A DNA stretch of 64,000 nucleotides from Lepidodermella squamata (Eukaryota > Animalia > Gastrotricha): NCBI GenBank assembly GCA_047495785.1, contig JBLDXI010000013.1, positions 1 to 64,000 of the forward strand, written 5' to 3'. A model generated the notes under the pieces. That model was not told where the DNA came from, searched no databases, and saw only the letters and a program-made list of their open reading frames with translations. A program made the position numbers and the translations under genes. Positions 2,984 to 36,363 of this stretch are shown piece after piece. The first letter of the stretch is position 1; the number at the start of each line of letters is the position of its first letter.

Positions 2984-3054
2984 AGCAACTGAAGTCACTG
3001 ATGAGCCTGTTACCCCCAGGCGAAACCGGTCTGACTACTCACGGGGTTGTTGCT
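2984..3054 (+). ncRNA. Type I hammerhead ribozyme (PLE copy 1)
   Basis: Helix I AGTCA/TGACT, core CTGATGA (2998-3004), helix II GCCTG/CAGGC, GAAA, minimal palindromic helix III ACCGGT, GUC cleavage after 3031. Confidence 0.93.
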
Positions 3055-3756: not shown

Positions 3757-4003
3757 TTGTGGATTGATAGTCATTTTCATAATAGGAAAGGGATTTTCCG
3801 CTATTTTTCGAGATTAACTGCGTCTCAAGTAGCATTAGAGCTAACTGCCGGGGTGCTTAGGCTACCTGTCTGGTAATTCTCTCCTAACTAACCCTAACTT
3901 TTGAGCTCGAGTCATGAGTACGATGTGAACGAGATGCGGTTTCTCATCTCGTATTATTTGCGGGTCAAATCTTTTAAACTGTTCAATTTTCATCTTTTGC
4001 CAG

Positions 4004-9215: not shown

Positions 9216-9286
9216 AGCAACTGAAGTCACTGATGAGCCTGTTACCCCCAGGCGAAACCGGTCTGACTACTCACGGGGTTGTTGCT
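9216..9286 (+). ncRNA. Type I hammerhead ribozyme (PLE copy 2)
   Basis: Identical to 2984-3054. Predicted cleavage after 9263. Confidence 0.93.
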
Positions 9287-10119
9287 TTTTCATTCTAGAC
9301 TGTTTTTTCGAGTATAGCCAGTTATAAATGGCATTTTTCCGCATAATTTTAATTGTTTTATTTATAGCTATTGCTTCCCTATACGGGTGGCTGCCTTTTA
9401 TTTTACTTCCCTATATGGGTGGTCATGGCTTGAACAATTATAGGTTATAACTGGTATTATTTCTTAGATAATTACGTGAAATAATACCGTTATATTATGG
9501 TTTTTTTCAAATTGTCCTCTCTATTTTTGCAGCTATTGCTTCCCTTTATGGGTGGCTGTTTTTAATTTGCTTCCCTGTATGGGTGGCTTTGTCCATTTTA
9601 CTACCCAGACGGGTGCTAAAATTATTATAAGCTTCCCTTTATGGGTGGCCATGTCATTTATGCCATGTTCTCACTAGAGGCATGTCGCATTTTTGAGCGC
9701 AATTAGCGTCATCTCTACTGTTTTGCTCAATAATAACATTGTTATGTTCTCCTTTTTAGAAGAATATTACTGAAAGTAATTACGTCCACAGCGAGATCGA
9801 CTCTACCAACACCTTTGCCAAAAACTGAGGTAAATTGTGCCATTCCATTTCATTTTTAGAGATTATTTAACGATAGAGAGGATTTGTGACGTTTTCGTCC
9901 CTATCCCTATCTCTATCCCTATCTCTATCCCTATCCCTATCCCTATCCCTATCTCTATCTCCGTCCCTATCTCTATCTCTATCCCTATTTGTGGATTGAT
10001 AGTCATTTTCATAATAGGAAAGGGATTTTCCGCTATTTTTCGAGATTAACTGCGTCTCAAGTAGCATTAGAGCTAACTGCCGGGGTGCTTAGGCTACCTG
10101 TCTGGTAATTCTCTCCTAA

Positions 10120-10197
10120 CTAACCCTAACCCTAACCCTAACCCTAACCCTAACCCTAACCCTAACCCTAACCCTAACCCTAACCCTAACCCACCCC
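10120..10197 (+). repeat. Interstitial telomeric tract between PLE copies 2 and 3
   Basis: (CCCTAA)~12 ending CCCACCCC. Confidence 0.97.
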
Positions 10198-12339
10198 ACG
10201 CGCTTCGTTACCTTGCTACGCCTTACGGACGAATTCCTGGCACTCGAGTTGGCCACGAATGGGACCATCGATGGTCCTCCTACCCAGCCTGGTGCTGCTG
10301 GCACGTCCTCAGGTAGGAAAATTAGCGATTCTACTTTTTCCCTAAGTACGAACTGTTTAACATGGGCAGATTTAGATTTCTTTAATTGCGAAGCCCTGAA
10401 AACCAATTCAAAATTCATTATTGACTTTTTATTTGCACGCCCCAGCGTATGGTACCTAACCTGTAGAATGGAACCCGGGCATCCAATGCGATGCCTTCGC
10501 TCCAATTTTCAAAACAACAAACTTTGGGTTCTTTGTCAGGAACATGCCTCTTGCTTTCACTCTGAAAAACAATTATGGTTTCACTTGGAGAATTGCCACC
10601 TACAGGATCTCTTTATTATCGAGGACATTCCTCGGCTTACCTCGCATTTATACGGGGTTAACATTTCTCTAATGGATAAATTACCAATCCACTCCTCGTC
10701 CCAACCAGCTTTGAATTTATCTGAGGACAATAAAAAATGGGAGAAGAAAGGTGTTATTGACCTCACCGGGAAACTATCTATCGAGTTAAAAAACCAGCTA
10801 TCCAAAGGTTTAAAATTTGTTAAACTTACTCGTAGTGATCTCCGTAATTCCATTTTTGAAGCAAAGGAAAAAATCGATGAACTCAAAGTAAAATTGAGTC
10901 GCAAATTGAGAAGAGACCTAAATTTAAAGCTCCGTAATGAGCTATCTAGTCTCAATAATGATATCCCCAACGTACCCTCAGATGTCTGGATTACCAAGAG
11001 CGATAAGGGCAATGTAGTGGTTGCAATCGCTAAAAATACCTACTGTAAAATGGGTGAGAAATTTCTTAACAATGCGACTACCTTTCGTAAGACTGAAACT
11101 GATGGCTTTACGGAATTCAGAAAATCTATCAATGACCTTAGAACAGAATGGCTAGCCTTCTCCCCTGATACCCTCAATAAATGGAAAAAAGTCTTTGTCA
11201 AATCGAAAAACCTCCGCACGAAATTCATTTACTTTCTTCCAAAACTCCACAAAGCAGCCGATGATGAAAGTCTTCTGAAAGTAAGACCCATCACCGACGG
11301 AACTAATACCTACACCTCTCAAGCTGACAAAACTCTGTATAAAAAATTACGTAAGGCAAGACTTAGCTTGACAACGGTCGTACACAGTAGCACAGAGGTT
11401 CTTAGCGAAATTCGGGCCTTGAATGATAGTGGAAAAAACCTGGATGAAGCAATCATCTGCACCGCTGATATCAGCGACATGTACAACCAAATCCCCCTTT
11501 TTGAAGCCGTAGACGGAGTGGCTTCCTACCTCAGAGAGCACGATATCCTAGAACCTGTTGAAAGACGCTTAGTATGCAAAGCCATTTACATTGTTTTGAG
11601 CTCAAGTTCTGTCAAATTCAATGACAAGTGGTATCGCCAAATTCAGGGTCTAGCTATGGGTGGTCATCTCTCCCCTTGGGTTGCTAATAATTGGCTCTAC
11701 ATACTTGAACGCAACCTGTGGATAATCCACTCACCCTTAGTAGGCTGTCGGTATCTTGATGACCTATTATCCATTTTTCTCAACAACCAGCGATCTGCTG
11801 AATTCATGAAAGAATACAGCCGTCTGCACCCCAATATAAAATTGGAAATTAACACTTCGGAGCATAGCGCCCAGTATTTGGACCTTATCATCTATAAGAA
11901 AGATGGTCGTGTAGAAACCGGTGTCTACTTCAAACCAACTGATAGCCTCTCTCTACTGAGCAACGGTTCGGAACACCCATCTCACATTTTTTCCGGAGTG
12001 ATAGAATCACAAATCTTGAGATACTCCCGAATTGCCTCAACTTTCAAAGACTGGGCTATAGCGGTACTCAGCCTATGTCATAGCCTCCTGAGAAGGGGAT
12101 ATACATGGACACTTGTGGCATCAACCATCAAGGGCACCTTGAAAAAATTGGAGAATAAGGAATGGCCCTTCATTAATAAGAAACTAACAAATAAACCATA
12201 CGAAACAATGCACGTCCTGCACTACGCAAAATCCCTTGAACCCGTATATAAAACCATTAAAAAACATGGTCGATTGGCACTTAAGCTGAATAAAAATAAT
12301 AGAAAGCGTTTCACCAAATCTGAATTTTCAGGAATGTAA
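10198..12339 (+). CDS. PLE RT, copy 3 (N-terminally truncated, RT domain uninterrupted)
   Basis: 708-aa ORF that differs from copy 2 at only about three residues. Confidence 0.85.
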   Translation, partial: TRFVTLLRLTDEFLALELATNGTIDGPPTQPGAAGTSSGRKISDSTFSLSTNCLTWADLDFFNCEALKTNSKFIIDFLFARPSVWYLTCRMEPGHPMRCLRSNFQNNKLWVLCQEHASCFHSEKQLWFHLENCHLQDLFIIEDIPRLTSHLYGVNISLMDKLPIHSSSQPALNLSEDNKKWEKKGVIDLTGKLSIELKNQLSKGLKFVKLTRSDLRNSIFEAKEKIDELKVKLSRKLRRDLNLKLRNELSSLNNDIPNVPSDVWITKSDKGNVVVAIAKNTYCKMGEKFLNNATTFRKTETDGFTEFRKSINDLRTEWLAFSPDTLNKWKKVFVKSKNLRTKFIYFLPKLHKAADDESLLKVRPITDGTNTYTSQADKTLYKKLRKARLSLTTVVHSSTEVLSEIRALNDSGKNLDEAIICTADISDMYNQIPLFEAVDGVASYLREHDILEPVERRLVCKAIYIVLSSSSVKFNDKWYRQIQGLAMGGHLSPWVANNWLYILERNLWIIHSPLVGCRYLDDLLSIFLNNQRSAEFMKEYSRLHPNIKLEINTSEHSAQYLDLIIYKKDGRVETGVYFKPTDSLSLLSNGSEHPSHIFSGVIESQILRYSRIASTFKDWAIAVLSLCHSLLRRGYTWTLVASTIKGTLKKLENKEWPFINKKLTNKPYETMHVLHYAKSLEPVYKTIKKHGRLALKLNKNNRKRFTKSEFSGM

Positions 12340-14614: not shown

Positions 14615-14685
14615 AGCAACTGAAGTCACTGATGAGCCTGTTACCCCCAGGCGAAACCGGTCTGACTATTCACGGGGTTGTTGCT
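14615..14685 (+). ncRNA. Type I hammerhead ribozyme (PLE copy 3)
   Basis: Same core and helices as the other copies. Predicted cleavage after 14662. Confidence 0.93.
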
Positions 14686-15518
14686 TTTTCATTCTAGACT
14701 GTTTTTTCGAGTATAGCCAGTTATAAATGGCATTTTTCCGCATAATTTTAATTGTTTTATTTATAGCTATTGCTTCCCTATACGGGTGGCTGCCTTTTAT
14801 TTTACTTCCCTATATGGGTGGTCATGGCTTGAACAATTATAGGTTATAACTGGTATTATTTCTTAGATAATTACGTGAAATAATACCGTTATATTATGGT
14901 TTTTTTCAAATTGTCCTCTCTATTTTTGCAGCTATTGCTTCCCTTTATGGGTGGCTGTTTTTGATTTGCTTCCCTGTAAGGGTGGCCTTGTCCATTTTAC
15001 TACCCAGACGGGTGCTAAAATTATTATAAGCTTCCCTTTATGGGTGGCTATGTCATTTATGCCATGTTCTCACTAGAGGCATGTCGCATTTTTGAGCGCA
15101 ATTAGCGTCATCTCTACTGTTTTGCTCAATAATAACATTGTTATGTTCTCCTTTTTAGAAGAATATTACTGAAAGTAATTACGTCCACAGCGAGATCGAC
15201 TCTACCAACACCTTTGCCAAAAACTGAGGTAAATTGTGCCTTTCCATTTCATTTTTAGAGATTATTTAACGATAGAGAGGATTTGTGACGTTTTCGTCCC
15301 TATCCCTATCTCTATCCCTATCCCTATCTCTATCCCTATCCCTATCCCTATCTCTATCTCCATCCCTATCTCTATCTCTATCCCTATTTGTGGATTGATA
15401 GTCATTTTCATAATAGGAAAGGGATTTTCCGCTATTTTTCGAGATTAACTGCGTCTCAAGTAGCATTAGAGCTAACTGCCGGGGTGCTTAGGCTACCTGT
15501 CTGGTAATTCTCTCCTAA

Positions 15519-15710
15519 CTAACCCTAACCCTAACCCTAACCCAACCCACACTAACCCTAACCCTAACCCTAACCCTAACCCTAACCCTAACCCTAACCC
15601 TAACCCTAACCCTAACCCTAACCCTAACCCTAACCCTAACCCTAACCCTAACCCTAACCCAACCCTAACCCCCTAACCCTAACCCTAACCCTAACCCTAA
15701 CCCTAACCCC
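15519..15710 (+). repeat. Interstitial telomeric tract with variant units
   Basis: (CCCTAA)n with CCCAA, CCCACACTAA and CCCCCTAA variants. Confidence 0.97.
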
Positions 15711-16659
15711 AATCTTGAAACACATCATCAAAAAACACCCGGGCAACACTAGTAACGCTGAATCCATGTGTGCAAATTACTTCAGAGCCTTCAACATTCA
15801 ATCATTCGGCTGGTTGGATATAGCTGATTTGTTAGCCAGGTACCCTCTGCGTAAAAAATGATGACAGGGAAAATAACTGTTTACCACCGTGTACCATTTA
15901 TCAACCGTTTCAAATTATGTTCCTAACTAAATGTATGCATATTGTTGGCTCTTGGAAAGACAAAATAAAGGAAGAACTTGTTGATTTTATCAGTTGTTAA
16001 ACATTTTTACTGCGGATACGGATAAGCAAATGTAACCGAATCAACTAATAAAAGAACGTATTGTAAAGAAATTGTGTGCCTTTTTTATAAGAAAGTAAAC
16101 ACATTCCATTGTTTTCCAAACAAATTACCTTGGAGACACAGACCCAACATAGCGCGGCAAAACAGAAAAACATAAATATTCAATCGATAGTTCAAAATAT
16201 CGATAGTTGGTGCAGGTTTACAATTATTGGATGAGCAAGATACTGGACAAGTTATTAGGGTTGAGAATTGATTCCAGCTTGATGGAAACTTGAATTATTT
16301 AATTTGGTCGTAATTTCTGAAATTCTACGGTGAATTGGGATTGCAAAACCCACACCTACCCTAAACTAACCCTAACCAGAACCCTGAACCTAACCGAAAC
16401 CAGAACCTTCCTGAACGGAAGGCTAGTCGCCTAAATCGCCGTATTGGGATTGCGAAACCCACACCTACCCTGAACTAACCCTAACCAGAACCCTGAAACT
16501 AACCTTAACCAGTTCCCTCCTGAACTGAAGGTTGATCGGAAGTTTCCTGAGCTGCAGGCTAAACGGAACCCTCCTGAAGCGAAAGCCTGGACATGATCCT
16601 GATCACGTATTTGTGCTTTGAGAACATGAATGCGGACATTTCATACTCTGTAAAATCTA

Positions 16660-19600
16660 GTTTGCCCTTCGAATTTCATGTCAACTTGATAGATTCTCAG
16701 CCAATTTCAGAATTATTCACAGGCATAGTGTTATAAGGTCTCCAGATGACGAATAGGTCGCCTAAAACCATGTACGGTTAACGGTAAAAGCTCCAAATAG
16801 GTTCAAGATGACCTATTTTGAGTTTGAGATATTCACTTTTGGCATTTCAAAATAATTCATAATTTCTCGGATCTTCAGTCAATTGGCGATTAAGCGCATG
16901 GAAATAGTATTATCGGGTCCGCTGATGGCGGAAATGTGGTCGAAAATCATGTTTGGTCAACGGAAAAGGTTCCAGATCGATTCCAGATGACCTTATTTAA
17001 TTTTAAGAATTTCACCTTTGGTACTGCCAAAGAAATTCATATTTATTCGGATCTTGGGTGAATTTTCTAGCGTTGGAATGGAAATCATATTTTCGGATCC
17101 GCCGATCAAGATAATGTGGTCAAAACCCTTGCACGGTGAACAGAAAAGGTTTCAGATCGATTCCAAGTGTGCTATTTTGAGATCCTAAAATTGACTTTTG
17201 GCATTTCAAATAATTTCATAATTTTTCGGATCATCATGCATTTCTTGATTAAACTGTTGGACATGGCGTTATCGAGTCCGCTTAACGCGGGGATGTGGTC
17301 AGTGGATATGTTCGGCCAATGACAAAGGTTCCAGATCGATTCCAAGTGACCTACTTCAGTTTTCAGATTTTCACTTTCGGATTTTATAAAAATATTGATT
17401 ATCCCTCGGATCTTCAGGCGGTTGTCGATTAATCAAATAAGCATCATCGGGTCCACCAACAACGATTGTGGGGTTGAGACCATGCACTGGTAACGTAAAA
17501 GGTTCCAGCGAGGTACCAATTGACCTTTGTGAGTAATGTAGAAGCCATGTTTGGCTTTTCAAATTTCATCTCAACATGACGAATCCTAAGCCAATTTGTG
17601 AATTATTTACAGGAATCGTGCTATCAGGTCCGCTGATGGCGATTACGTGGTTGAAAACCATGTACGGTGAAGGGAAAAGGTTCCAGATCGTTCAAAAATG
17701 ACCCATTTTGAGTTCGATCTGGTCACGGTTGACGTTTCAAATTTCATCTAAACTTACCGGATTCGGAGCCAATTGGTGAAATATTGACAGGAATAGTACT
17801 TTCAAGACAGCTGATGACGAATATCAAGTCGAAAAACACACCCGATTCGAGATAAAGGTTCCAGATCGATCCCAAATGACATACTTTAAGTTGGAAATTA
17901 TCACTTTTGGACTATTTGGACCTTTCAAAATAGTCAGGGATTTCTCGGATTCCCATGCTTTTGCCGATTAAATACATGGAATTGGTACTTTCAGGGCTCC
18001 TGAGCACGAATATGATGCCAGATTCGCGAGGGAATCTCGGAAAAAGGTTCCAGGTCGTTTCCAAATGACCTAGTTTGAACTTGATGTTTTGTAATTAAGC
18101 ATTTCGAAATTATTCATGAATTCTCGGATCTTGAGGGGATTTTCGGCTATTGGAATGAAATAGTACTATCGGGTCAACCGATCATGAATGTGTCGTCCAA
18201 ACCTTGGTACGGTGAACAAAAAAAGGTTCCAGAACGATTCCAAGTGACCCACTTCGGGCTTCAAATGTTCACTTTTGGCATCTTAAAATAATTCATTATT
18301 CCTCGAATTTTCTGGCACTGGTCGATTAATCGCATGGAAATAGTATTATCGGGTCCGCTAATGACGATTACGTGGTTGAAAACCATGTACGGTGAAGGGA
18401 AAAGGTTCCAGATCGGTTCCAGATGGCCTATTTTGAGATCGACCTGGTCACGGTTGACCTTTCAAATTTCATCTATACTTCCCGGATTCTTGGTCACTTC
18501 GTGAATAAATCGCGGGAATAGTAATGTCAGGTCCGCCGATAAAGAATATCAAATCGGATTAAGAAGGCTGTCTACCATAAAGGTTCCAGAGCGAATCGAA
18601 ATCACCTATTTTGAAGTTGAAAATAATTTGTTACCTTTCAGTTTTGATTTTAACTTGACGGATCCTGAGCCATTTGGTGAGAAATTTACGGGAATAGCAC
18701 AATCAGGTCCGCTGATGAGGAATATCAAGTCGAAAAACACACCCGATTCGCGATAAAAGATCCAGATCGATCCCAAATGACCTACTTGGATTTTTAAATT
18801 TTCATGTTTGACCTTTCAAATGGGTTGTTAAATTGTCGGATTCTTCGCCAATTTGTGAATAATTTACAGGAATCATGATATGAGGTCCGCTGATGACGAT
18901 AACGTGGTTGAAAACCGTGTACGGTGAAGGGAAAAGGTTCCAGACCGATCCCAAATGACCTACTTTGACTTTTAAATTTTCATGATTGACCTTTCAAATT
19001 TGATCTTAACTTATCGGATTCTCGGCCAGTTTGTGAATAATTTACAGGAATCGTGCTATCAGGTCCGCTGATGGCGATTACGTGGTTGAAAACCATGTAC
19101 GGTGAAGGGAAAAGGTTCCAGATCGTTCAAAAATGACCCATTTTGAGTTCGATCTGGTCACCGTTGACGTTTCAAATTTCATCTAAACTTACCGGATTCA
19201 GAACCAATTGGTGAAATATTTATGGGAATAGTACTTTCGAGTCAGCTGATGACGAATATCAGGTCGGATCAAGACGGCTGTCGACAATAAAGGTTCCGGA
19301 GCGAACTAAAATCATCGATTTCGAAATTGGGATTTTCACTTTTGGCATTTCAAAATAATTCATAACTTCTCGGATCTTCAGTCAATTGCCGATTAATCGC
19401 ATGGAAATAGCAATATCGGGTCCGCTGATGACGGAAATATGGTTGAAAACCATGTACGGTGAAGGGAAAAGGTTCCAGATCGGTTCCAGATGACCTACTT
19501 TGAGATTTTAAAATTTCACTTCGTCCGGTTCAAATTCTTCAACAATTCCGGTGATCCTGAGTTAACTGTTGATTAAACACAAAGAATAAGTAAAATAGGG

Positions 19601-19690
19601 TCCGCTGATCACGGAAATCATATCCAAAACGAGGTGCGTCTAATATTGAGGGTTCCAGATTTATTTAACGTGACCTGTTGGGTCATAATT
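16660..19690 (+). repeat. ~179-bp satellite, ~17 diverged monomers
   Basis: The AGGTTCCAG anchor recurs about every 174-189 bp. Same-order arrays are at ~21500-24720, ~27240-30460 and ~32990-35957. Confidence 0.93.
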
Positions 19691-20289
19691 TTGTGAAATT
19701 ACTTGCTCATTTATTTCGCTTGTTAAGTTTTCATTCCCGCTGAATACGATTGGCGTAACGAGGAGGTGCCCCTTCAGGGGATGCATCTGCACTTGTCAGT
19801 TTTGCCCGCTTCTTGTGTTCATGCTGTAATTTGTAGTTGGATTTTGAAAAATATCTTGGAAATAATTTTTTATGTGCTCTAGTTTGCACGTGACTTGAGC
19901 TTGGAATCTTATTTGATTCATAAAGGATGACTCGCTAATTAAATACAACGCATGAATAAGATCCATGTGACTTGACTTGGCACGACGATTGGCAAAATCT
20001 GGCAACAGAATAATTTACGCAGCCATTCAATCAAAAAAGCTTATAAAAGTCTTTCTCGAAGACTGTAAAATTATCAATCGCCTTCAACAGCACTATCTGT
20101 TAAACTTTGTTTTCAACATATAGTAAGTTTGAGGACACTAGTGTAAAACCCTTCATAACTTTTGCTTCAACGTTTGACGAATATTACCTAAGTAATTTTT
20201 TCAAAGTTATGAAACTGTTCCAAGGCAGTAGACTTATGTTGAAATGTTTACAATTTATTTATTTCTAATTCTATCCTTTGTAATTTCCC

Positions 20290-20461
20290 TGACTCCCCTG
20301 GGTCATGGTGAAATATTGAGAATTTGCCTGACTCCCCTGGGTCACGGTAAAATAAATAATTTCCCTGACTCCCCTGGGTCATGGTGAAATATTAATAATT
20401 TGCCTGACTCCCCTGGGTCATGGTAAAATAATTTCAAACAGAAAATGACTCCCCTGGGTCA
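20290..20461 (+). repeat. Four TGACTCCCCTGGGTCA hairpin repeats (L unit)
   Basis: Direct read. Also at 25331-25464 and 31072-31205, with a single copy at ~35982-35997. Confidence 0.9.
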
Positions 20462-20721
20462 TTCTTCTGATTTATTTTGAATACAATTTTTGTCCGAGTT
20501 CCTTTGAGCCATTTGTCGGGAATTTTTATCGGATCTCAGTATTATCGCGGAGTGGTTAGGGACACATAATTTTTGTGATGAAGAATTATCATAAACATAA
20601 AAATGATGCTCATCTTGGATCCCTATGATGGAGTAATGGTAGGGCCCGGTTTGACTCTCGGTAAAACGAGAGGCCCCGGTTTGCAGCTCGTCTGTATTAA
20701 ACTATTACCAATAACCCTAAC

Positions 20722-23700
20722 AACTCTCGCCCGTTCGGTCCAATGGATCACCATGAAACTGAATTAGGGTGAAAAGTGAGCTTAGCGATGTGATCCCTCA
20801 TATTTTCTATATAATGATGACGAGGGAAAATAACTGTTTACCTCTGGTCAGTTATCAGCAGCTTCAAAATATGTTCCTAACTAAAGGTATGCATATTGTT
20901 GGCACTTGGCAATACGAAATAAAGGAAGAATTTTTTGATTTTATCATTTGTTAAACATTTTTACTGCGGATACGGATAAGCAAATGTAATCGAAAGAACG
21001 TATTGTAAGGAAATTGTGTGCCTCTATGGGAAAGTATACTCATCCCACTGTTTTCCAAACAAATTACCTGGGACACAAAGGTCCAACATAGAGCGGCAAA
21101 ACAGAAAAACAGAAATATTCAATCGACAGTTGTGGAATTGCGGGTTTACAAAATTATCGCATGAGCAAGATATTGGACAGGTTATTAGGGTTGAAAATTG
21201 ATTCCAGCTTGATGGAAACTTGAATTATCTAATTTGGTGCTAACCTCTGAATTGTTACGCCGTTTTGGGATTGCAAAACCCACACCTACCCTGAGCTAAC
21301 CCTAACCAGAACCCTGAACCTAACCTGAACCCTGAAACTAACCTTAACCAGAACCCTCCTGAACTGAAGGCTATTCGGAAGCCTCCTGAAGTGAGAGCAT
21401 AGACAGGATCCTGATCACGTATTTGAACTTGGAGAACTTGAATGCCGACATTTCGAAACTCTGCTAATAATCTCTCGCACAGCCAGTCAATTTTGCAGTT
21501 ATTTGACCTTTCAAATGTCATGTCAACTTGATAGATTCTGAGCCGATTTAAGAATTATTCACAGGCATAGTGTTATAAGGTCTCCAGATGACAAATATGT
21601 CGCCTAAAATCATGTACGGTTAACGGTAAAAGCTCCAGATCGGTTCCAGATGACCTATTTTGAGTTTGAGATATTCACTTTTGGCATTTCAAAATAATTC
21701 ATAATTTCTCGGATCTCGGATCTTCGGAGTCAATTGGCGATTAATCGAATGGAAATAGTATTATCGGGTCCGCTGATGGCGGAAATGTGGTCGAAAATCA
21801 TGTACGGTGAAGGGAAAAGGTTCCAGATCGATTCCAGATGACCTTATTTGAGTTTGAGAGTCTCACCTTTGGTACTGCCAAAGAAATTTATATTTATTCG
21901 GATCTTGGGTGAATTTTCAAGCGTTGGAATGGAAATAATACTTTCGGGTCCGCCGATCAAGATTATGTGGTCAAAACCCTTGTACGGTGAACAGAAAAGG
22001 TTCCAGATCGATTCCAAGTGGGCTATTTTGAGTTCCGAAATTTAACTTTTGGCATTTCAAATAATTTCATACTTTTTCGGATCTTCATGCATTTCTTGAT
22101 TAACCGCTTGGAAATAGTGTTATTGAGTCCACTGAACGCGGGTACGTGGTCAAGAAACAAGTACGACCAATGACAAAGGTTCCAGATCGATCCCAAATGA
22201 CCTATTTTGAGTTCCGTAATTTGACTTTTGGCATTTCAAATAATTTCATAATTTTTCGGATCTTCATGCATTCCTTGATTAACCGCATGGAAATAGTTTT
22301 ATCGAGTCCGCTTAACGCGGGGATGTGGTCAGGGGACATGTGCGGCCAATGACAAAGGTTCCAGATCGATTCCAAGTGACCTACTTCAGTTTTCAGATTT
22401 TCACTTTTGGATTTTATAAAATTATTGACTATCCCTCGGACCTTCAGGCGGTTGTCGATTAATCAAATAAGCATCATCGGGTCCACCAACCACGATTGTG
22501 GGGTTGAGACCATGCACTGTTAAAAGGAAAAGGTTCCAGCGAGGTACCAATTGACCTTTGTGAGTAATGTAGAAGCCATGTTTGGCTTTTCAAATTTCAT
22601 CTCAACATGACGAATCCTAAGCCAATTTGTGAATAATTTACAGGAATCGTGCTATCAGGTCCGCTGATGGCGATTACGTGGTTGAAAACCATGTACGGTG
22701 AAGGGAAAAGGTTCCAGATCGTTCAAAAATGACCCATTTTGAGTTCGATCTGGTCACCGTTGACGTTTCAAATTTCATCTAAACTTACCGGATTCAGAAC
22801 CAATTGGTGAAATATTTATGGGAATAGTACTTTCGAGTCAGCTGATGACGAATATCAAGTCGAAAAACACACCCGATTCGAGATAAAGGTTCCAGATCGA
22901 TCCCAAATGACATACTTTTAGTTGGAAATCCTCACTTTTGGACTATTGGGACACTTCAAAATAGTCAGGGATTTCTCGGATTTCCATGCTTTTGCCGATG
23001 AAATACATTGAATTGGTACTCTCAGGGCTCCTGAGCACGAATATGATACCAGATTCACGAGGGAATCTCAGAAAAAGGTTCCAGGTCGTTTCCAAATGAC
23101 CTAGTTTGAGTTTGGTGTTTGTAATTAAGCATTTCGAAATTATTCATAAATTCTCGGATCTTCAGGGTATTTTCGGCTATTGGAATGAAAATAGTACTCT
23201 CGGGTCAACCGACCATGAATGTGTCGTCCAAACCTTGGTACGGTGAACAAAAAAAGGTTCCAGAACGATTCCAAGTGACCCACTTGGGGCTTCAAATTTT
23301 CACTTTTGGCATCTTAAAATAATTCATTATGCCTCGGATTTTCAGGCACTGGTCGATTAATCGCATGGAAATAATATTTTCGGGTCCGCTAATGACGATT
23401 ATGTGGTTAAAAACCATGTACGGTGAAGGGAAAAGGTTCCAGATCAATCCCAAATGACCTAATTTGAGTTCAACCTGGTCACGGTTGACCTTTCAAATTT
23501 CATCTAAACTTCCCGGATTCTTGGTCACTTCGTGAATAAATCGCAGGAATAGTAATGTCAGGTCCGCTGATAATGAATATCAAATCGGATTATGAAGGCT
23601 ATCTACCATAATGGTTCCAGAGCGAATCCAAATCACGTACTTTGAAGTGGAAAATTAAACAATTTTACCTTTCAATTTTGATCTCAACTTGACGAATCCT

Positions 23701-25712
23701 GAGCCATTTGGTGAAAAATTGACGGGAATAGCACAATCAGGTCCGCTGATGAGGAATATCAAGTCGGAAAACACACCCGATTCGAGATAAAAGATCCAGA
23801 TCGATCCCAAATGACCTACTTTGACTTTTAAATTTTCATGTTTGACCTTTCAAACGGGTCGTTAAATTGTCGGATTCTTCGCCAATTTGTGAATAATTTA
23901 CAGGAATCATGATATGAGGACCGCTGATGACGATAACGTGGTTGAAAACCATGTACGGTGAAGGGAAAAGGTTCCAGACCGATCCCAAATGACCTACTTT
24001 GACTTTTAAATTTTCATGATTGACCTTTCAAATTTGATCTTAACTTATCGGATTCTCGGCCAGTTTGTGAATAATTTACAGGAATCATGCTATCAGGTCC
24101 GCTGATGGCGATTACGTGGTTGAAAACCATGTACGGTGAAGGGAAAAGGTTCCAGATCGTTCCAAAATGACCCATTTTGAGTTCGATCTGGTCACGGTTG
24201 ACCTTTCAAATTTCATCTAAACTTACCGGATTCAGAGCCAATTGGTGAAATATTGACAGGAATAGTACTATCAAGTCAGCTGATGACGAATATCAAGTTG
24301 AATCAAGACGGCTGTCGATAATAAAGGTTCCGGAGCGAACTAAAATCATCTATTTCGAAATTGAGATTTTCACTTTTGGCATTTCAAAATAATTCATATT
24401 TTCTCGGATCTTCAGTCAGCTGCAGATTAATCGCATGGAATTAGTATTATCGGGTCCGCTGATGGTGGAAATGTGGTCGAAAATCATGTACGGTGAAGGG
24501 AAAAGGTTCCAGATCGGTTCCAAATGACCTACTTTGAAATTTAAAATGTCACTTATGGAGGTTCAAATTCTTCAACAATTCCGTTGATCCTGAGTTAACT
24601 ATTGATTAAACACAAAGAATAAGTAAAATGGGGTCCGCTGATTGCGGAAATCATATCCAAAACGAGGTACGTCTAATATTGAGGGTTCCAGATTTATTTA
24701 ACGTGACCTGTTGGGTCATAATTTTGTGAAATTACTTGCTCATTTATTTCGCTTGTTAAGTTTTCATTCCCGCTGAATACGATTGGCATAACGATGAGGT
24801 GCACCTTCAGGGGATGCATCTGCACTTGTCAGTTTTGCCCGCTTCTTGTGTTCATGCTGTAATTTGCATTTTAATTTCCAAAAATATCTTGGAAATAATT
24901 TTTTATGTGCTTTAGTTTGCACGTGACTTGAGCTTGGAATCTTATTTCATTCATAAAGAACGACTCGCTAATTAAATACAACGCATGAATAAGATCCATG
25001 TGACTTGACTTGGCACGACGATTGGCAAAATCTGGCGAGAAAATAATTTACGCAGCCATTCAATCAAAGAAGCTTATAAAAGTCTTTCTCGAAGACTGTA
25101 AAATTATCAATCGCTCTTCAACAGCACTATCTGTTAAACTTTGTTTTCAACATATAGTAAGTTTGAGGACACTAGTGTAAAACCCTTCATAACTTTTGCT
25201 TCAACGTTTGACGAATATTGAAGTAATTTGAAGTAATTTTTTCAAAGTTATGAAACTGTTCCAAGGCAGTAGACTTATGTTGAAATGTTTACAATTTATT
25301 TATTTCTAATTCTATCCTTTGTAATTTCCCTGACTCCCCTGGGTCATGGTGAAATATTAATAATTTGCCTGACTCCCCTGGGTCATGGTAAAATAAATAA
25401 TTTGCCTGACTCCCCTGGGTCATGGTAAAATAAGATCAAACAGAAAATGACTCCTCTGGGTCATTCTTCTGATTGAATTGTATTCATTCTTTGAATACAA
25501 ATTTTGAGCCATTTGTCGGGAATTTTTTATCGGATCTCAGTATTATCGCGGAGTGGTTAGGAACACATAATTTTTGTGATGAAGAATTATCACAAACATA
25601 AAAATGATGCTCATCTTGGATCCCTATGATGGAGTAATGGTAGGGCCCGGTTTGACTCTCGGTAAAACGAGAGGCCCCGGTTTGCAGCTCGTCTGTATTA
25701 AACTATTACCAA
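20722..25712 (+). mobile_element. Subtelomeric L unit 2
   Basis: Diverged paralog of L1 with ~18 monomers. It ends ...ctattaccaaTAACCCTAAC followed by telomeric repeats. Confidence 0.6.
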
Positions 25713-25785
25713 TAACCCTAACCCTAACCCTAACCCTAACCCTAACCCTAACCCTAACCCTAACCCTAACCCTAACCCTAACCCT
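25713..25785 (+). repeat. Interstitial telomeric tract
   Basis: (CCCTAA)~12. Confidence 0.97.
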
Positions 25786-26756
25786 CCTGAAATTTCACTT
25801 TTGGCATTTCAAATAATTTCATAATTCTTCGGATCTTCAGGCATTTCTCGATTAATCGCATGGAAATAGTGTTATCGAGTCCGCTTTACGCGAATATGTG
25901 GTCAAAAAACATGTACGGCCAATGACAAAGGCACCAGATCGATCCAAAATGACCTATTTTGAGTCCTGAAACTTCACTTTTGGCATTTCAAATAATTTCA
26001 TAATTCTTCGGATCTTCAGGCATTTCTCGATTAATCGCATGGAAATAGTGTTATCGAGTCCGCTTTACGCGAATATGTGGTCAAAAAACATGTACGGCCA
26101 ATGACAAAGGCACCAGATCGATCCAAAAGGACCTAGTTCCAAGATAGTTCCAAGATGGGTTCCAAGATGACGCACTGAGAACAAAACACTGCTTTACAGG
26201 AATTGAAATCTCGCTTGTTATGTTGCTCAAGCACATGTTACGATCGTTTATTTGTTCGCCAGCTGCTCACGAAATTACGTAAATAGCAGAGTTCGAAGCA
26301 TTTAAAAGACGATGAGAAAAACTCATAAAACAAGCTCTCGTTGAGGTTTAAAGTCACTGATGAGCTACCTTAGCCAAGTAGCGAAACCGGTCTGACGAAT
26401 GGCTAACCTCTAAGTTTTCTTTTAAATCACTAATCAGTTTATTTGTTAAAATTTGTCGGTTCTAACACTGGGTTAATATCTTCAAAACAACCAATGGCTC
26501 CCCTGGGCCTCAGAATACCAACTCCCCTGGGTTGGCAATTCTCATTTAAGGTAGAGACCCCGTTCTCTTACCTCATGACAAGCGAAGGCTCCTCTGGGCC
26601 ACGGATTACTAACTCACCTGGATGAGTAATTCTTACACAAGGTAGAGACCCCGATCTCTAACCTCGACTCCTGAAGAGTAATGGTAGGGCCCGGCTTGTT
26701 TTCCTTCTGGAAAACCCCGGTTTGCAGCTTCGTCTGTAGTCACACACCACTCAAAA
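25786..26756 (+). mobile_element. Subtelomeric S unit 1 (2 satellite monomers + hammerhead + hairpins + conserved 3' domain)
   Basis: Telomeric tracts flank both sides. It has two near-identical ~179-bp monomers, a hammerhead, and a 3' domain homologous to that of the L units. Confidence 0.65.
26343..26410 (+). ncRNA. Type I hammerhead ribozyme (S unit 1)
   Basis: Helix I GTCA/TGAC, CTGATGA 26357-26363, helix II GCTAC/GTAGC, GAAA, ACCGGT, GUC cleavage after 26392. Confidence 0.92.
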
Positions 26757-26810
26757 AACCCTAACCCTAACCCTAACCCTAACCCTAACCCTAACCCTAA
26801 CCCTAACCCT
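26757..26810 (+). repeat. Interstitial telomeric tract
   Basis: (CCCTAA)~9. Confidence 0.97.
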
Positions 26811-29800
26811 GGGACACAAAGGTCCAACATAGAGCGGCAAAACAGAAAAACAGAAATATTCAATCGACAGTTGTGGAATTGCGGGTTTACAAAATTATCG
26901 CATGAGCAAGATATTGGACAGGTTATTAGGGTTGAAAATTGATTCCAGCTTGATGGAAACTTGAATTATCTAATTTGGTGCTAACCTCTGAATTGTTACG
27001 CCGTTTTGGGATTGCAAAACCCACACCTACCCTGAGCTAACCCTAACCAGAACCCTGAACCTAACCTGAACCCTGAAACTAACCTTAACCAGAACCCTCC
27101 TGAACTGAAGGCTATTCGGAAGCCTCCTGAAGTGAGAGCATAGACAGGATCCTGATCACGTATTTGAACTTGGAGAACTTGAATGCCGACATTTCGAAAC
27201 TCTGCTAATAATCTCTCGCACAGCCAGTCAATTTTGCAGTTATTTGACCTTTCAAATGTCATGTCAACTTGATAGATTCTGAGCCGATTTAAGAATTATT
27301 CACAGGCATAGTGTTATAAGGTCTCCAGATGACAAATATGTCGCCTAAAATCATGTACGGTTAACGGTAAAAGCTCCAGATCGGTTCCAGATGACCTATT
27401 TTGAGTTTGAGATATTCACTTTTGGCATTTCAAAATAATTCATAATTTCTCGGATCTCGGATCTTCGGAGTCAATTGGCGATTAATCGAATGGAAATAGT
27501 ATTATCGGGTCCGCTGATGGCGGAAATGTGGTCGAAAATCATGTACGGTGAAGGGAAAAGGTTCCAGATCGATTCCAGATGACCTTATTTGAGTTTGAGA
27601 GTCTCACCTTTGGTACTGCCAAAGAAATTTATATTTATTCGGATCTTGGGTGAATTTTCAAGCGTTGGAATGGAAATAATACTTTCGGGTCCGCCGATCA
27701 AGATTATGTGGTCAAAACCCTTGTACGGTGAACAGAAAAGGTTCCAGATCGATTCCAAGTGGGCTATTTTGAGTTCCGAAATTTAACTTTTGGCATTTCA
27801 AATAATTTCATACTTTTTCGGATCTTCATGCATTTCTTGATTAACCGCTTGGAAATAGTGTTATTGAGTCCACTGAACGCGGGTACGTGGTCAAGAAACA
27901 AGTACGACCAATGACAAAGGTTCCAGATCGATCCCAAATGACCTATTTTGAGTTCCGTAATTTGACTTTTGGCATTTCAAATAATTTCATAATTTTTCGG
28001 ATCTTCATGCATTCCTTGATTAACCGCATGGAAATAGTTTTATCGAGTCCGCTTAACGCGGGGATGTGGTCAGGGGACATGTGCGGCCAATGACAAAGGT
28101 TCCAGATCGATTCCAAGTGACCTACTTCAGTTTTCAGATTTTCACTTTTGGATTTTATAAAATTATTGACTATCCCTCGGACCTTCAGGCGGTTGTCGAT
28201 TAATCAAATAAGCATCATCGGGTCCACCAACCACGATTGTGGGGTTGAGACCATGCACTGTTAAAAGGAAAAGGTTCCAGCGAGGTACCAATTGACCTTT
28301 GTGAGTAATGTAGAAGCCATGTTTGGCTTTTCAAATTTCATCTCAACATGACGAATCCTAAGCCAATTTGTGAATAATTTACAGGAATCGTGCTATCAGG
28401 TCCGCTGATGGCGATTACGTGGTTGAAAACCATGTACGGTGAAGGGAAAAGGTTCCAGATCGTTCAAAAATGACCCATTTTGAGTTCGATCTGGTCACCG
28501 TTGACGTTTCAAATTTCATCTAAACTTACCGGATTCAGAACCAATTGGTGAAATATTTATGGGAATAGTACTTTCGAGTCAGCTGATGACGAATATCAAG
28601 TCGAAAAACACACCCGATTCGAGATAAAGGTTCCAGATCGATCCCAAATGACATACTTTTAGTTGGAAATCCTCACTTTTGGACTATTGGGACACTTCAA
28701 AATAGTCAGGGATTTCTCGGATTTCCATGCTTTTGCCGATGAAATACATTGAATTGGTACTCTCAGGGCTCCTGAGCACGAATATGATACCAGATTCACG
28801 AGGGAATCTCAGAAAAAGGTTCCAGGTCGTTTCCAAATGACCTAGTTTGAGTTTGGTGTTTGTAATTAAGCATTTCGAAATTATTCATAAATTCTCGGAT
28901 CTTCAGGGTATTTTCGGCTATTGGAATGAAAATAGTACTCTCGGGTCAACCGACCATGAATGTGTCGTCCAAACCTTGGTACGGTGAACAAAAAAAGGTT
29001 CCAGAACGATTCCAAGTGACCCACTTGGGGCTTCAAATTTTCACTTTTGGCATCTTAAAATAATTCATTATGCCTCGGATTTTCAGGCACTGGTCGATTA
29101 ATCGCATGGAAATAATATTTTCGGGTCCGCTAATGACGATTATGTGGTTAAAAACCATGTACGGTGAAGGGAAAAGGTTCCAGATCAATCCCAAATGACC
29201 TAATTTGAGTTCAACCTGGTCACGGTTGACCTTTCAAATTTCATCTAAACTTCCCGGATTCTTGGTCACTTCGTGAATAAATCGCAGGAATAGTAATGTC
29301 AGGTCCGCTGATAATGAATATCAAATCGGATTATGAAGGCTATCTACCATAATGGTTCCAGAGCGAATCCAAATCACGTACTTTGAAGTGGAAAATTAAA
29401 CAATTTTACCTTTCAATTTTGATCTCAACTTGACGAATCCTGAGCCATTTGGTGAAAAATTGACGGGAATAGCACAATCAGGTCCGCTGATGAGGAATAT
29501 CAAGTCGGAAAACACACCCGATTCGAGATAAAAGATCCAGATCGATCCCAAATGACCTACTTTGACTTTTAAATTTTCATGTTTGACCTTTCAAACGGGT
29601 CGTTAAATTGTCGGATTCTTCGCCAATTTGTGAATAATTTACAGGAATCATGATATGAGGACCGCTGATGACGATAACGTGGTTGAAAACCATGTACGGT
29701 GAAGGGAAAAGGTTCCAGACCGATCCCAAATGACCTACTTTGACTTTTAAATTTTCATGATTGACCTTTCAAATTTGATCTTAACTTATCGGATTCTCGG

Positions 29801-31453
29801 CCAGTTTGTGAATAATTTACAGGAATCATGCTATCAGGTCCGCTGATGGCGATTACGTGGTTGAAAACCATGTACGGTGAAGGGAAAAGGTTCCAGATCG
29901 TTCCAAAATGACCCATTTTGAGTTCGATCTGGTCACGGTTGACCTTTCAAATTTCATCTAAACTTACCGGATTCAGAGCCAATTGGTGAAATATTGACAG
30001 GAATAGTACTATCAAGTCAGCTGATGACGAATATCAAGTTGAATCAAGACGGCTGTCGATAATAAAGGTTCCGGAGCGAACTAAAATCATCTATTTCGAA
30101 ATTGAGATTTTCACTTTTGGCATTTCAAAATAATTCATATTTTCTCGGATCTTCAGTCAACTGCAGATTAATCGCATGGAATTAGTATTATCGGGTCCGC
30201 TGATGGTGGAAATGTGGTCGAAAATCATGTACGGTGAAGGGAAAAGGTTCCAGATCGGTTCCAAATGACCTACTTTGAAATTTAAAATGTCACTTATGGA
30301 GGTTCAAATTCTTCAACAATTCCGTTGATCCTGAGTTAACTATTGATTAAACACAAAGAATAAGTAAAATGGGGTCCGCTGATTGCGGAAATCATATCCA
30401 AAACGAGGTACGTCTAATATTGAGGGTTCCAGATTTATTTAACGTGACCTGTTGGGTCATAATTTTGTGAAATTACTTGCTCATTTATTTCGCTTGTTAA
30501 GTTTTCATTCCCGCTGAATACGATTGGCATAACGATGAGGTGCACCTTCAGGGGATGCATCTGCACTTGTCAGTTTTGCCCGCTTCTTGTGTTCATGCTG
30601 TAATTTGCATTTTAATTTCCAAAAATATCTTGGAAATAATTTTTTATGTGCTTTAGTTTGCACGTGACTTGAGCTTGGAATCTTATTTCATTCATAAAGA
30701 ACGACTCGCTAATTAAATACAACGCATGAATAAGATCCATGTGACTTGACTTGGCACGACGATTGGCAAAATCTGGCGAGAAAATAATTTACGCAGCCAT
30801 TCAATCAAAGAAGCTTATAAAAGTCTTTCTCGAAGACTGTAAAATTATCAATCGCTCTTCAACAGCACTATCTGTTAAACTTTGTTTTCAACATATAGTA
30901 AGTTTGAGGACACTAGTGTAAAACCCTTCATAACTTTTGCTTCAACGTTTGACGAATATTGAAGTAATTTGAAGTAATTTTTTCAAAGTTATGAAACTGT
31001 TCCAAGGCAGTAGACTTATGTTGAAATGTTTACAATTTATTTATTTCTAATTCTATCCTTTGTAATTTCCCTGACTCCCCTGGGTCATGGTGAAATATTA
31101 ATAATTTGCCTGACTCCCCTGGGTCATGGTAAAATAAATAATTTGCCTGACTCCCCTGGGTCATGGTAAAATAAGATCAAACAGAAAATGACTCCTCTGG
31201 GTCATTCTTCTGATTGAATTGTATTCATTCTTTGAATACAAATTTTGAGCCATTTGTCGGGAATTTTTTATCGGATCTCAGTATTATCGCGGAGTGGTTA
31301 GGAACACATAATTTTTGTGATGAAGAATTATCACAAACATAAAAATGATGCTCATCTTGGATCCCTATGATGGAGTAATGGTAGGGCCCGGTTTGACTCT
31401 CGGTAAAACGAGAGGCCCCGGTTTGCAGCTCGTCTGTATTAAACTATTACCAA
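26811..31453 (+). mobile_element. Subtelomeric L unit 3 (5'-truncated)
   Basis: Essentially identical to 21070-25712 (offset 5741). Confidence 0.6.
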
Positions 31454-31526
31454 TAACCCTAACCCTAACCCTAACCCTAACCCTAACCCTAACCCTAACC
31501 CTAACCCTAACCCTAACCCTAACCCT
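31454..31526 (+). repeat. Interstitial telomeric tract
   Basis: Same length as 25713-25785. Confidence 0.97.
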
Positions 31527-32497
31527 CCTGAAATTTCACTTTTGGCATTTCAAATAATTTCATAATTCTTCGGATCTTCAGGCATTTCTCGATTAATCGC
31601 ATGGAAATAGTGTTATCGAGTCCGCTTTACGCGAATATGTGGTCAAAAAACATGTACGGCCAATGACAAAGGCACCAGATCGATCCAAAATGACCTATTT
31701 TGAGTCCTGAAACTTCACTTTTGGCATTTCAAATAATTTCATAATTCTTCGGATCTTCAGGCATTTCTCGATTAATCGCATGGAAATAGTGTTATCGAGT
31801 CCGCTTTACGCGAATATGTGGTCAAAAAACATGTACGGCCAATGACAAAGGCACCAGATCGATCCAAAAGGACCTAGTTCCAAGATAGTTCCAAGATGGG
31901 TTCCAAGATGACGCACTGAGAACAAAACACTGCTTTACAGGAATTGAAATCTCGCTTGTTATGTTGCTCAAGCACATGTTACGATCGTTTATTTGTTCGC
32001 CAGCTGCTCACGAAATTACGTAAATAGCAGAGTTCGAAGCATTTAAAAGACGATGAGAAAAACTCATAAAACAAGCTCTCGTTGAGGTTTAAAGTCACTG
32101 ATGAGCTACCTTAGCCAAGTAGCGAAACCGGTCTGACGAATGGCTAACCTCTAAGTTTTCTTTTAAATCACTAATCAGTTTATTTGTTAAAATTTGTCGG
32201 TTCTAACACTGGGTTAATATCTTCAAAACAACCAATGGCTCCCCTGGGCCTCAGAATACCAACTCCCCTGGGTTGGCAATTCTCATTTAAGGTAGAGACC
32301 CCGTTCTCTTACCTCATGACAAGCGAAGGCTCCTCTGGGCCACGGATTACTAACTCACCTGGATGAGTAATTCTTACACAAGGTAGAGACCCCGATCTCT
32401 AACCTCGACTCCTGAAGAGTAATGGTAGGGCCCGGCTTGTTTTCCTTCTGGAAAACCCCGGTTTGCAGCTTCGTCTGTAGTCACACACCACTCAAAA
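31527..32497 (+). mobile_element. Subtelomeric S unit 2
   Basis: Duplicate of 25786-26756. Confidence 0.65.
32084..32151 (+). ncRNA. Type I hammerhead ribozyme (S unit 2)
   Basis: Identical to 26343-26410. Confidence 0.92.
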
Positions 32498-32551
32498 AAC
32501 CCTAACCCTAACCCTAACCCTAACCCTAACCCTAACCCTAACCCTAACCCT
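32498..32551 (+). repeat. Interstitial telomeric tract
   Basis: Same length as 26757-26810. Confidence 0.97.
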
Positions 32552-35500: not shown

Positions 35501-36260
35501 TTGACCTTTCAAATTTCATCTAAACTTACCGGATTCAGAACCAATTGGTGAAATATTGACAGGAATAGTACTATCAAGTCAGCTGATGACGAATATCAAG
35601 TTGAATCAAGACGGCTGTCGATAATAAAGGTTCCGGAGCGAACTAAAATCATCTATTTCGAAATTGAGATTTTCACTTTTGGCATTTCAAAATAATTCAT
35701 ATTTTCTCGGATCTTCAGTCAACTGCAGATTAATCGCATGGAATTAGTATTATCGGGTCCGCTGATGGTGGAAATGTGGTCGAAAATCATTTACGGTGAA
35801 GGGAAAAGGTTCCAGATCGGTTCCAGATGACCTACTTTGAAATTTAAAATGTCACTTATGGAGGTTCAAATTCTTCAACAATTCCGTTGATCCTGAGTTA
35901 ACTGTTGATTAAACACAAAGAATAAGTAAAATGGGGTCCGCTGATTGCGGAAATCATGGTGAAATAAATTCAAACAGAAAATGACTCCCCTGGGTCATTC
36001 TTCTGATTGAATTGTATTCATTCTTTGAATACAAATTTTGTCTCAGTTCCTTTGAGCCATTTGTCGGGAATTTTTTATCGGATCTCAGTATTATCGCGGA
36101 GTGGTTAGGAACACATAATTTTTGTGATGAAGAATTATCACAAACATAAAAATGATGCTCATCTTGGATCCCTATGATGGAGTAATGGTAGGGCCCGGTT
36201 TGACTCTCGGTAAAACGAGAGGCCCCGGTTTGCAGCTCGTCTGTATTAAACTATTACCAA
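32552..36260 (+). mobile_element. Subtelomeric L unit 4 (5'-truncated, internally deleted)
   Basis: Same 5' and 3' junctions as L3. It lacks one monomer (~33660) and ~0.75 kb at ~35957. Confidence 0.6.
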
Positions 36261-36313
36261 TAACCCTAACCCTAACCCTAACCCTAACCCTAACCCTAAC
36301 CCTAACCCTAACC

Positions 36314-36354
<41 letters not shown>

Positions 36355-36363
36355 CCCTAACCC
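36261..36363 (+). repeat. Innermost telomeric tract
   Basis: (CCCTAA)~17, followed by unrelated sequence. Confidence 0.97.

Follow-up and report, generated by a model that had tools for sequence, protein, structure and literature searches.

Organization of the subtelomeric array

The window analyzed here, a stretch of 64,000 nucleotides from the gastrotrich Lepidodermella squamata, forms the left end of contig C13 in an assembly of 121 Mb and 151 contigs. Its terminal (CCCTAA)n tract is followed by seven internal ones, all on the + strand. Two copies of a reverse transcriptase (RT)-encoding element lie between tracts and are followed by six consecutive ORF-less units:

394-1168: terminal (CCCTAA)n tract
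4430-6964 and 10213-12339: ORFs of two RT-encoding copies, between tracts
15707-36360, + strand: array of ORF-less units, with a tail at the end of each
15707-20721, + strand: unit L'
20722-25781, + strand: unit L
25782-26806, + strand: unit S
26807-31522, + strand: unit L
31523-32547, + strand: unit S
32548-36360, + strand: unit L (innermost)
16300-19400, 21900-24400, 25785-26135 and in later units: 178-179-nt tandem repeats, 70-98% alike
44719-46128: ORF with a forkhead domain

No ORF of at least 150 aa is present in any of the six units between 15707 and 36360. The 178-179-nt repeats account for the greater part of L and for the first third of S; some repeat copies contain CTGATGA but do not match a hammerhead descriptor. 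Short tandem hairpin repeats of the CTCCCCTGGG type are located 200-350 nt upstream of the L and S tails (20281-20431 and 26496-26665).

All elements of the window have their 5′ ends directed toward the chromosome end and carry (CCCTAA)n after their 3′ ends, which is the geometry expected if cDNA is made on the element RNA from a TTAGGG 3′ overhang as primer. Priming geometry of this type has been described for endonuclease-deficient Penelope-like elements (PMC8557442, PMC6431247).

The array also contains a higher-order repeat. A 5741-bp block (21067-26807) is present a second time at 26808-32548; the 99.98% identity of the two copies and the exact agreement of their tract lengths (66 and 48 nt) indicate duplication at the DNA level. 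The repeat comprises most of L with its tract and S with its tract, and the junction at 26807/26808 falls on a CCT found in the tract as well as in the L sequence. The same junction also marks the start of a third copy (32549), which is more diverged. Subtelomeric arrays of this genome thus grow by DNA-level recombination as well as by new attachments and, because the block is duplicated, the six tail copies of the window do not represent six independent events.

The tail and its copies in the window

Each tail measures ~85 nt and consists of a 5′ strand, an outer stem that encloses a variable hairpin, a second hairpin, and a linker, and is always directly followed by a 9-mer complementary to the telomere repeat. 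Scores are given for R1, a covariance model built from the tail alignment:

20630-20721, + strand: L-type tail and template, seamless copy (R1 115.6 bits, E 2.7e-23)
20630-20645: 5′ strand of this tail, GGAGUAAUGGUAGGGC
20646-20649, paired with 20676-20679: outer stem CCGG
20655-20660 and 20667-20672: arms of the variable hairpin, with loop 20661-20666
20682-20686 (UGCAG), 20687-20691 (loop) and 20692-20696 (CUGUA): second hairpin
20697-20712: linker
20713-20721: telomere-complementary 9-mer, AACCCTAAC
25631-25722, + strand: L-type tail and 9-mer, then in-register telomere tract 25716-25781
26675-26765, + strand: S-type tail and 9-mer (R1 85.3 bits)
26691-26694, paired with 26717-26720: outer stem of the S tail
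26698-26704 and 26709-26715: arms of the variable hairpin of the S tail
26723-26727 and 26734-26738: second hairpin of the S tail
26757-26765: 9-mer of the S tail, then tract up to 26806
31372-31463, + strand: L-type tail, duplicate of the copy at 25631, then tract 31457-31522
32416-32506, + strand: S-type tail, duplicate of the copy at 26675, then tract 32500-32547
36179-36270, + strand: L-type tail of the innermost unit, then tract 36264-36360, then unique subtelomeric DNA

An earlier note on this DNA had quoted one L string (20631-20721) and one S string (26676-26765), with the inner hairpins CTCTCG/CGAGAG and GTTTTCC/GGAAAAC, respectively, and a common TGCAG/CTGTA; all of these are found at those positions exactly as described. 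Its term “3′-terminal RNA domain” suits the attached DNA copies only, whereas in seamless copies, which join the next unit directly, conservation extends past the 9-mer over a block of another ~36 nt. A 19-nt motif at the 5′ side of the tail occurs in six window copies (four L, two S) with no mismatches, compared to 0.00 expected from shuffled sequence. The seventh match, at 52224, was rejected as a chance hit: it has three mismatches, lies inside an ORF for an RRM protein and is missed by the covariance model.

Genome-wide distribution and families

The earlier note had suggested a covariance-model search of this genome and had asked whether hits always abut telomeric repeats. Searching the 121 Mb with R1 at a threshold of E <= 3.6e-6 yielded 31 tail copies; BLAST places the 91-nt L tail at 22 genomic positions. 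In subtelomeric arrays, with the 3′ end facing inward, lie 27 of the 31 copies. Of 30 inspected copies, 17 pass in register from AACCCTAAC directly into (CCCTAA)n, ten (L, M, and S types) run seamlessly into the start of the next unit with no tract in between, and three are decayed interior relics (one in C9 at 265 kb, two in C29) followed by degenerate telomere-like bases. A 209-nt query comprising the tail and both flanks revealed a fourth relic in C46, with an 89% match to the C29 copies.

The decayed interior tails in C29 (3.536 and 3.587 Mb, a pair with 99% match) and C46 (288.8 kb, 89%) are of the N type and represent an old telomere junction inside a dispersed segmental repeat.

All non-relic copies are subtelomeric, on the plus strand at contig starts and on the minus strand at contig ends, at distances of 0.6-77 kb from the contig start (+) or 18-38 kb from the contig end (-) where lengths are known. 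Their 3′ ends thus point toward the centromere, as telomere-primed cDNA requires. Several copies are cut to ~150-250 nt by an upstream tract, and truncated copies always retain the whole tail. Outside the duplicated block of the window, at least eight different 5′-truncation points are found, which demonstrates independent events.

Based on the inner hairpin, the copies fall into five families: L, S, M (C21, C9), N (C41, C20), and O (C32). In this single genome, the five families, which may share descent, agree at 42 of 92 tail positions, whereas their flanks cannot be aligned with one another; L copies are nearly the same throughout the genome. A metagenome scan with a gapped pattern, which proved too loose, gave 120 GC-rich chance matches, and none of the 80 loci returned fits the model; a strict 21-mer had no match in a scan of prokaryote genomes, as expected.

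Two near-identical loci, C35:75459-78550 (minus strand) and C63:63689-66782, contain a tail devoid of its first 8 nt together with the 9-mer and an L-like block. Tail and block lie directly upstream of a Gly/Arg-rich coding-like stretch and adjoin the same 244-aa ORF; a host gene may have been captured here, or may use the promoter region of the element.

Predicted fold of the tail

Consensus folding of ten variants by RNAalifold gives four helices: the CCGG:CCGG stem, the variable hairpin inside it, UGCAG:CUGUA, and a closing helix UAGGG:CCCUA that involves the template. Pairs were counted on a model-based alignment of 13 distinct sequences. The variable hairpin is represented by five different perfect stems of 6-7 bp, in which 6 of 7 pairs are changed on both sides; its covariation score is reached by none of 500 shuffles, and pairing drops from 92% to 31-52% if the partners are slid by 1-3 columns. 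The outer stem and the second hairpin are 100% paired and show one-sided changes only (G-U to A-U, G-C to G-U). Support for the structure, on which the earlier note had made its proposal depend, is thus obtained from two sides: the variable hairpin covaries, being free in sequence and fixed in shape, while the second hairpin and the junction strands are fixed in sequence throughout the five families. The solid part of the predicted fold is this two-hairpin core with its sequence-invariant junction strands.

The closing helix GUAAUGG:CUAUUAC put forward previously is not retained. It pairs fully only in L and M, is shifted in register in S and weak in N and O (67% of cells), and pair counts reveal no closing helix conserved across the five families. 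A small hairpin involving upstream flank bases was discarded as too weak (2-5 bp with shifting register). Folding energies of single sequences are not better than those of shuffles (z -0.4 to -1.0), and with the downstream block included they are likewise near shuffles (z -1.7 to +0.1).

Conservation of the tail could also have causes other than an RNA function, namely common descent, subtelomere recombination, or gene conversion, or the tail could act as double-stranded DNA, either as a protein-binding site or as a boundary by interstitial telomere tracts. Part of the window array did arise by DNA-level duplication, with identical tract lengths, the near-identity of L copies suggests recent spread or homogenization, and three of the four tested helices are devoid of two-sided covariation. 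Nevertheless, five hairpin sequences each form a perfect stem at the same place, the 42 invariant positions stand next to flanks that cannot be aligned, and decay in the interior relics reaches the stems. Moreover, G-U pairing is confined to the sense strand: reading the complementary strand would turn the G-U pair in the second hairpin of L and S into a C-A mismatch, a point in favor of sense RNA. We consider a tail that has no function as RNA very improbable.

Search for ribozymes within and near the tail

In Rfam 15, no family covers the tail at gathering score, nor at E <= 5-10 in searches of 11.6 kb, 501 nt, and 341 nt. The Rfam comparison recommended in the earlier note thus yields no family for the tail up to E <= 10; a hammerhead in S, picked up by the same small search, serves as positive control. 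ARAGORN identifies no tRNA-like structure in the tail. The tail itself was rejected as a hammerhead (Rfam CL00010), as it has neither a CUGANGA nor a GAAA core and is negative in both descriptor scan and Rfam. Hammerheads are present nearby:

26352-26396, + strand: minimal type I hammerhead in S (Hammerhead_HH9, 15.3 bits, E 0.74, below gathering)
32093-32137, + strand: second copy of the S hammerhead
2993-3035, 9225-9267, and 14624-14666: minimal type I hammerheads of the RT elements

The S hammerhead, which lies 283 nt upstream of the S tail, is predicted to cleave after C26392. In core and helix I it agrees with the RT-element hammerheads, while helix II is different in sequence and still paired. 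M matches the S hammerhead stretch by 91%, at a position ~280-360 nt before the end of the M unit. The descriptor scan found no hammerhead in L.

These observations bear on the idea that the tail is no handle for an RT but an element of RNA processing or stability, such as an unrecognized self-cleaving ribozyme, a 3′-end protector, or a template mask, which makes or shields the 9-mer end. In rotifer Athena/Terminon elements, a hammerhead ribozyme occupies the same position just before the C-rich repeats (PMC6431247), and the sequence of the tail can be read as a three-way-junction outline resembling small ribozymes. Further, the CCCUA of the template might be bound by the invariant UAGGG until the overhang displaces the latter. 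This helix closes the RNAalifold domain and is paired in 89% of cells, and the template is paired with a probability of 0.4-0.6 in the S and M ensembles. However, UAGGG:CCCUA shows no covariation, is weaker in family N (UUGGG), and reaches a probability of only 0.04-0.11 in L and N. Together with the negative Rfam searches of 341 and 501 nt, in which the S hammerhead was nevertheless detected, and with a sequence that has no CUGANGA or GAAA core, this makes a processing element appear distinctly unlikely.

A conserved block beyond the template

Seamless copies extend the conserved region past the 9-mer:

20722-20759, + strand: conserved block after the 9-mer in seamless copies (~36 nt, 20724-20759), common to L, M, and S
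20737-20749: hairpin GGUCC-AAU-GGAUC within the block
20806-20815: TATA-like box

The ~36-nt block follows the 9-mer in 10 of 10 seamless copies and never directly follows a telomere tract. Thus, the unit boundary is only the priming point inside a module of ~135 nt, and in master copies the tail represents one half of this putative module, which straddles the 9-nt template. The template RNA must cover more than a single unit, which the seamless two-unit copy at 15707-25722 demonstrates. Of the 5 bp in the block hairpin, one has changed in a compensatory manner between L/S and M. On the three junctions, RNAalifold additionally pairs GGGC and AUGGU of the tail with GCCC and ACCAU of the block, and the template would then lie in a loop closed by these helices. 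A CCAAT box can likewise be read in the block, followed by a TATA-like box at a distance of ~65 nt in L and ~45 nt in S. The block represents either a CCAAT-type promoter piece or the second half of the module.

The tail might accordingly be seen as the upstream half of a ~135-nt template module resembling telomerase RNA, whose template sits in a loop closed by pairing between the 5′ strand and the block; RT or telomerase would then engage the closed module and not a 3′ end, on an RNA that is unit-spanning or circular. Such a module would account for the continuation of tail and 9-mer into the block in all ten seamless copies, for the position of the block, which is never found directly after a tract, and for its compensatory pair, and the RNAalifold pairs GGGC:GCCC and AUGGU:ACCAU span the template. 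The 9-mer comprises 1.5 repeats, which is the length of telomerase templates. The two-unit copy indicates that templates longer than one unit are used, and the hammerhead of S and its putative counterpart in M, ~280-360 nt upstream, could excise a unit-length RNA that contains the junction. On the other hand, the junction is available in only three variants, in which the proposed closing pairs are invariant, the AUGGU:ACCAU helix of M carries a G/A mismatch, and single-sequence folds choose other partners. The block may act as a promoter at the DNA level, given its CCAAT box and the TATA-like box 45-65 nt later, L has no hammerhead by descriptor, and the vertebrate telomerase RNA model (RF00024), run on the genome, gave noise only and nothing usable for comparison. 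On balance, we regard a closed module as unlikely. Its fuller version, in which the looped-out 1.5-repeat template pairs with the chromosome end and the flanking helices hold a TERT-sister RT or telomerase, again on a unit-spanning or circular RNA, is less probable still; if true, it would be a living intermediate between retroelement RNA and telomerase RNA.

Gene-less units and their RT-encoding neighbors

The units measure 5.0 kb (L), 5.0-6.0 kb (M), and 1.0 kb (S). Coding capacity was read on whole units of L, S, and M. The longest stop-to-stop frames of these three reach 63-99 aa (99 in L, 63 in S), and no similarity to the RT or the second ORF of the neighboring element was found in them. 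S and L have only internal repeats and the tail in common, while S and M have only the hammerhead stretch, the tail, and one 36-nt stretch of repeat in common.

The RT ORFs of the window match RVT_1 with 23 bits, below the Pfam cut-off, and have generic RT matches only in NCBIfam; a sequence search of the PDB gave no match for the RT ORF. The nearest Atlas clusters are RT clusters of rotifers and basidiomycetes, which, together with the type I hammerheads, fits elements of the Athena/Coprina type (PMC8557442, PMC6431247). RT ORFs and ORF-less units occur in the same arrays, separated by telomere tracts (close cases in C21 and C57). No genomic RT match lies inside any tail-bearing unit, and no RT-encoding element of the assembly has a tail of the present type.

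In the DNA examined, three types of tail abut telomere tracts: type I is the tail described here, type II is found in the RT family of the window, in relatives of this family, and in a tandem array of C32 with a 1605-bp period, and type III belongs to a third RT family. The window contains three type II tails:

10058-10130, + strand (also 3826-3898 and 15457-15529): type II tail of the RT element

Its layout consists of GCCGGGG, a covarying hairpin, CCUGUCUGGUAAUU (CCUGUCUGGUAWU), an 11-nt spacer, and the template. R1 gives type II tails only 10.4 bits (E 3.8), and types I and II share only a motif of 9-11 nt, GUCUG(G)UA(A)UU (the GUCUGUAUU motif). All seven matches of this motif in the window are located 11-14 nt before the template, in L and RT-element tails, compared to 1.9 expected. 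As the motif was picked post hoc, we estimate its weight at roughly p 0.05; it may give a lead as to which RT serves type I, and nothing more. L and S do not form a LINE/SINE pair: both are ORF-less, and the elements that do encode an RT have a different tail that shares only this motif.

In C32:4488086-4502955, at least ten type II tail copies are spaced exactly 1605 bp apart, and this array is probably another gene-less passenger family, sharing its tail with the RT element. In C14:1430-4521 (~1611-1660), a ~40-nt fragment of a type II tail follows closely on an L tail, isolated by a telomere tract on either side; as this fragment suggests, truncation can affect an attachment almost at once.

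A proposed priming module

With a rough probability of 0.55, we favor the reading that the tail is the cis-acting priming module of non-coding retroelements (L, S, M, N, O), which an RT supplied in trans copies onto chromosome ends. More specifically, its sequence is best read as a priming and RT-docking module of non-autonomous, telomere-primed Penelope-like passengers, and the likeliest suppliers of the RT would be the endonuclease-less Penelope-like elements stacked in the same arrays. What stands of the earlier idea of an “RT-recognition element” is a conserved, structured cis-element at the telomere junction; a LINE/SINE pairing of L with S falls away. Against a priming module counts that only one helix covaries, the outer CCGG:CCGG stem and the second hairpin being nearly invariant.

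In the proposed cycle, a sense RNA, which would be unit-spanning or excised by hammerheads and possibly circular, presents AACCCUAAC to the G-overhang. This 9-mer would pair with the TTAGGG 3′ overhang, which then serves as the primer, while the two-hairpin domain directly 5′ of the 9-mer would dock or position the RT of neighboring Penelope-like elements. Because the two-hairpin domain adjoins the 9-mer, the tail would be copied first as the RT extends the overhang, and synthesis would stop at varying points. Telomerase would re-cap the new end afterwards.

Comparison with known systems

In the eel pair UnaL2/UnaSINE1, the RT reportedly recognizes a conserved 3′ stem-loop, through which non-autonomous RNAs borrow it (Kajikawa and Okada, 2002), and the R2 RT is said to recognize a structure in the 3′ UTR by the priming site (Luan and Eickbush, 1995). 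The tail resembles both in that a conserved 3′ structure adjoins the priming site. In contrast to a stringent LINE/SINE pair, there is no autonomous partner with the same tail here, as the RT elements share only the 9-11-nt motif, and unlike in LINE/SINE pairs and R2, priming is assigned to the chromosome end and not to a nicked target.

We know of no RNA feature established as being recognized by Penelope-like RTs, the closest relatives of telomerase; the only candidate for RT recognition in rotifer elements that we are aware of is the hammerhead, whose role is, to our knowledge, unknown. The tail offers a compact, sequence-defined candidate for such RNA recognition, with five hairpin variants, an invariant second hairpin, and a fixed 9-nt template. 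As it resides on gene-less RNAs that need recognition in trans, RNA recognition by telomere-priming RTs becomes directly testable. New here are the tail as a structured element of five families, its genome-wide census, and the template-straddling module.

The closest match is found in the endonuclease-deficient Athena/Terminon elements of bdelloid rotifers and in Coprina, where the 3′ end likewise has a terminal RNA fold with a short reverse-complement telomere stretch right behind it, and 5′-truncated copies are arranged head to tail in the same direction with short telomere tracts between them (PMC6431247, PMC8557442). The units described here share with Athena/Terminon the 3′ end joined to reverse-complement telomere repeats and facing the centromere, as well as 5′-truncated copies. 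They differ in four respects. In place of a hammerhead, there is a two-hairpin domain that has no hammerhead core, with the S hammerhead 283 nt upstream; L, S, and M are gene-less and encode no RT of the Penelope-like clade; the repeat is TTAGGG and not of the rotifer type; and the template is a single 9-mer in master copies. The arrangement of the tail is therefore best read as a variant of the Athena/Terminon one, with a non-hammerhead fold in place of the hammerhead.

Metazoan non-LTR retrozymes are ORF-less, tandem elements with type I hammerheads that are thought to be mobilized by RTs of Penelope-like elements or Terminons (PMC7761336). S has these sequence features, being ORF-less and tandem with a type I hammerhead, and M is 91% alike over the hammerhead stretch. 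However, retrozymes, whose cycle includes a circular RNA intermediate, are small repeats, either dispersed or in tandem, for which no telomere-pairing tail has been described, and L has no hammerhead. A parallel for the dependence on a neighbor is provided by Drosophila HeT-A, the most abundant telomere-building element, which is devoid of an RT and relies on TART/TAHRE in the same array (PMC4700185); the same use of a neighbor's RT by an RT-less element is proposed here. HeT-A, in contrast, belongs to the non-LTR elements, has a Gag ORF, ends in poly(A), and lives in a host that has no telomerase, whereas here units have no ORF and alternate with telomerase repeats.

The presumed enzyme, a Penelope-like RT, belongs to the sister clade of TERT (PMC8557442), which brings telomerase RNA into the comparison. 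No pseudoknot or CR4/5-like element was found in the folds of the tail or the module. Unlike telomerase RNA, which a single host gene provides, the element is mobile and present in many copies; it has no template boundary, the RNA past the template being copied completely, and its helices lie 5′ of the template. Common to both are a template of 1.5 repeats that is complementary to the G-strand and adjoins conserved helices, and a possible enclosing helix. The module also allows a test of whether a helix-flanked template, as in telomerase RNA, already exists in retroelements.
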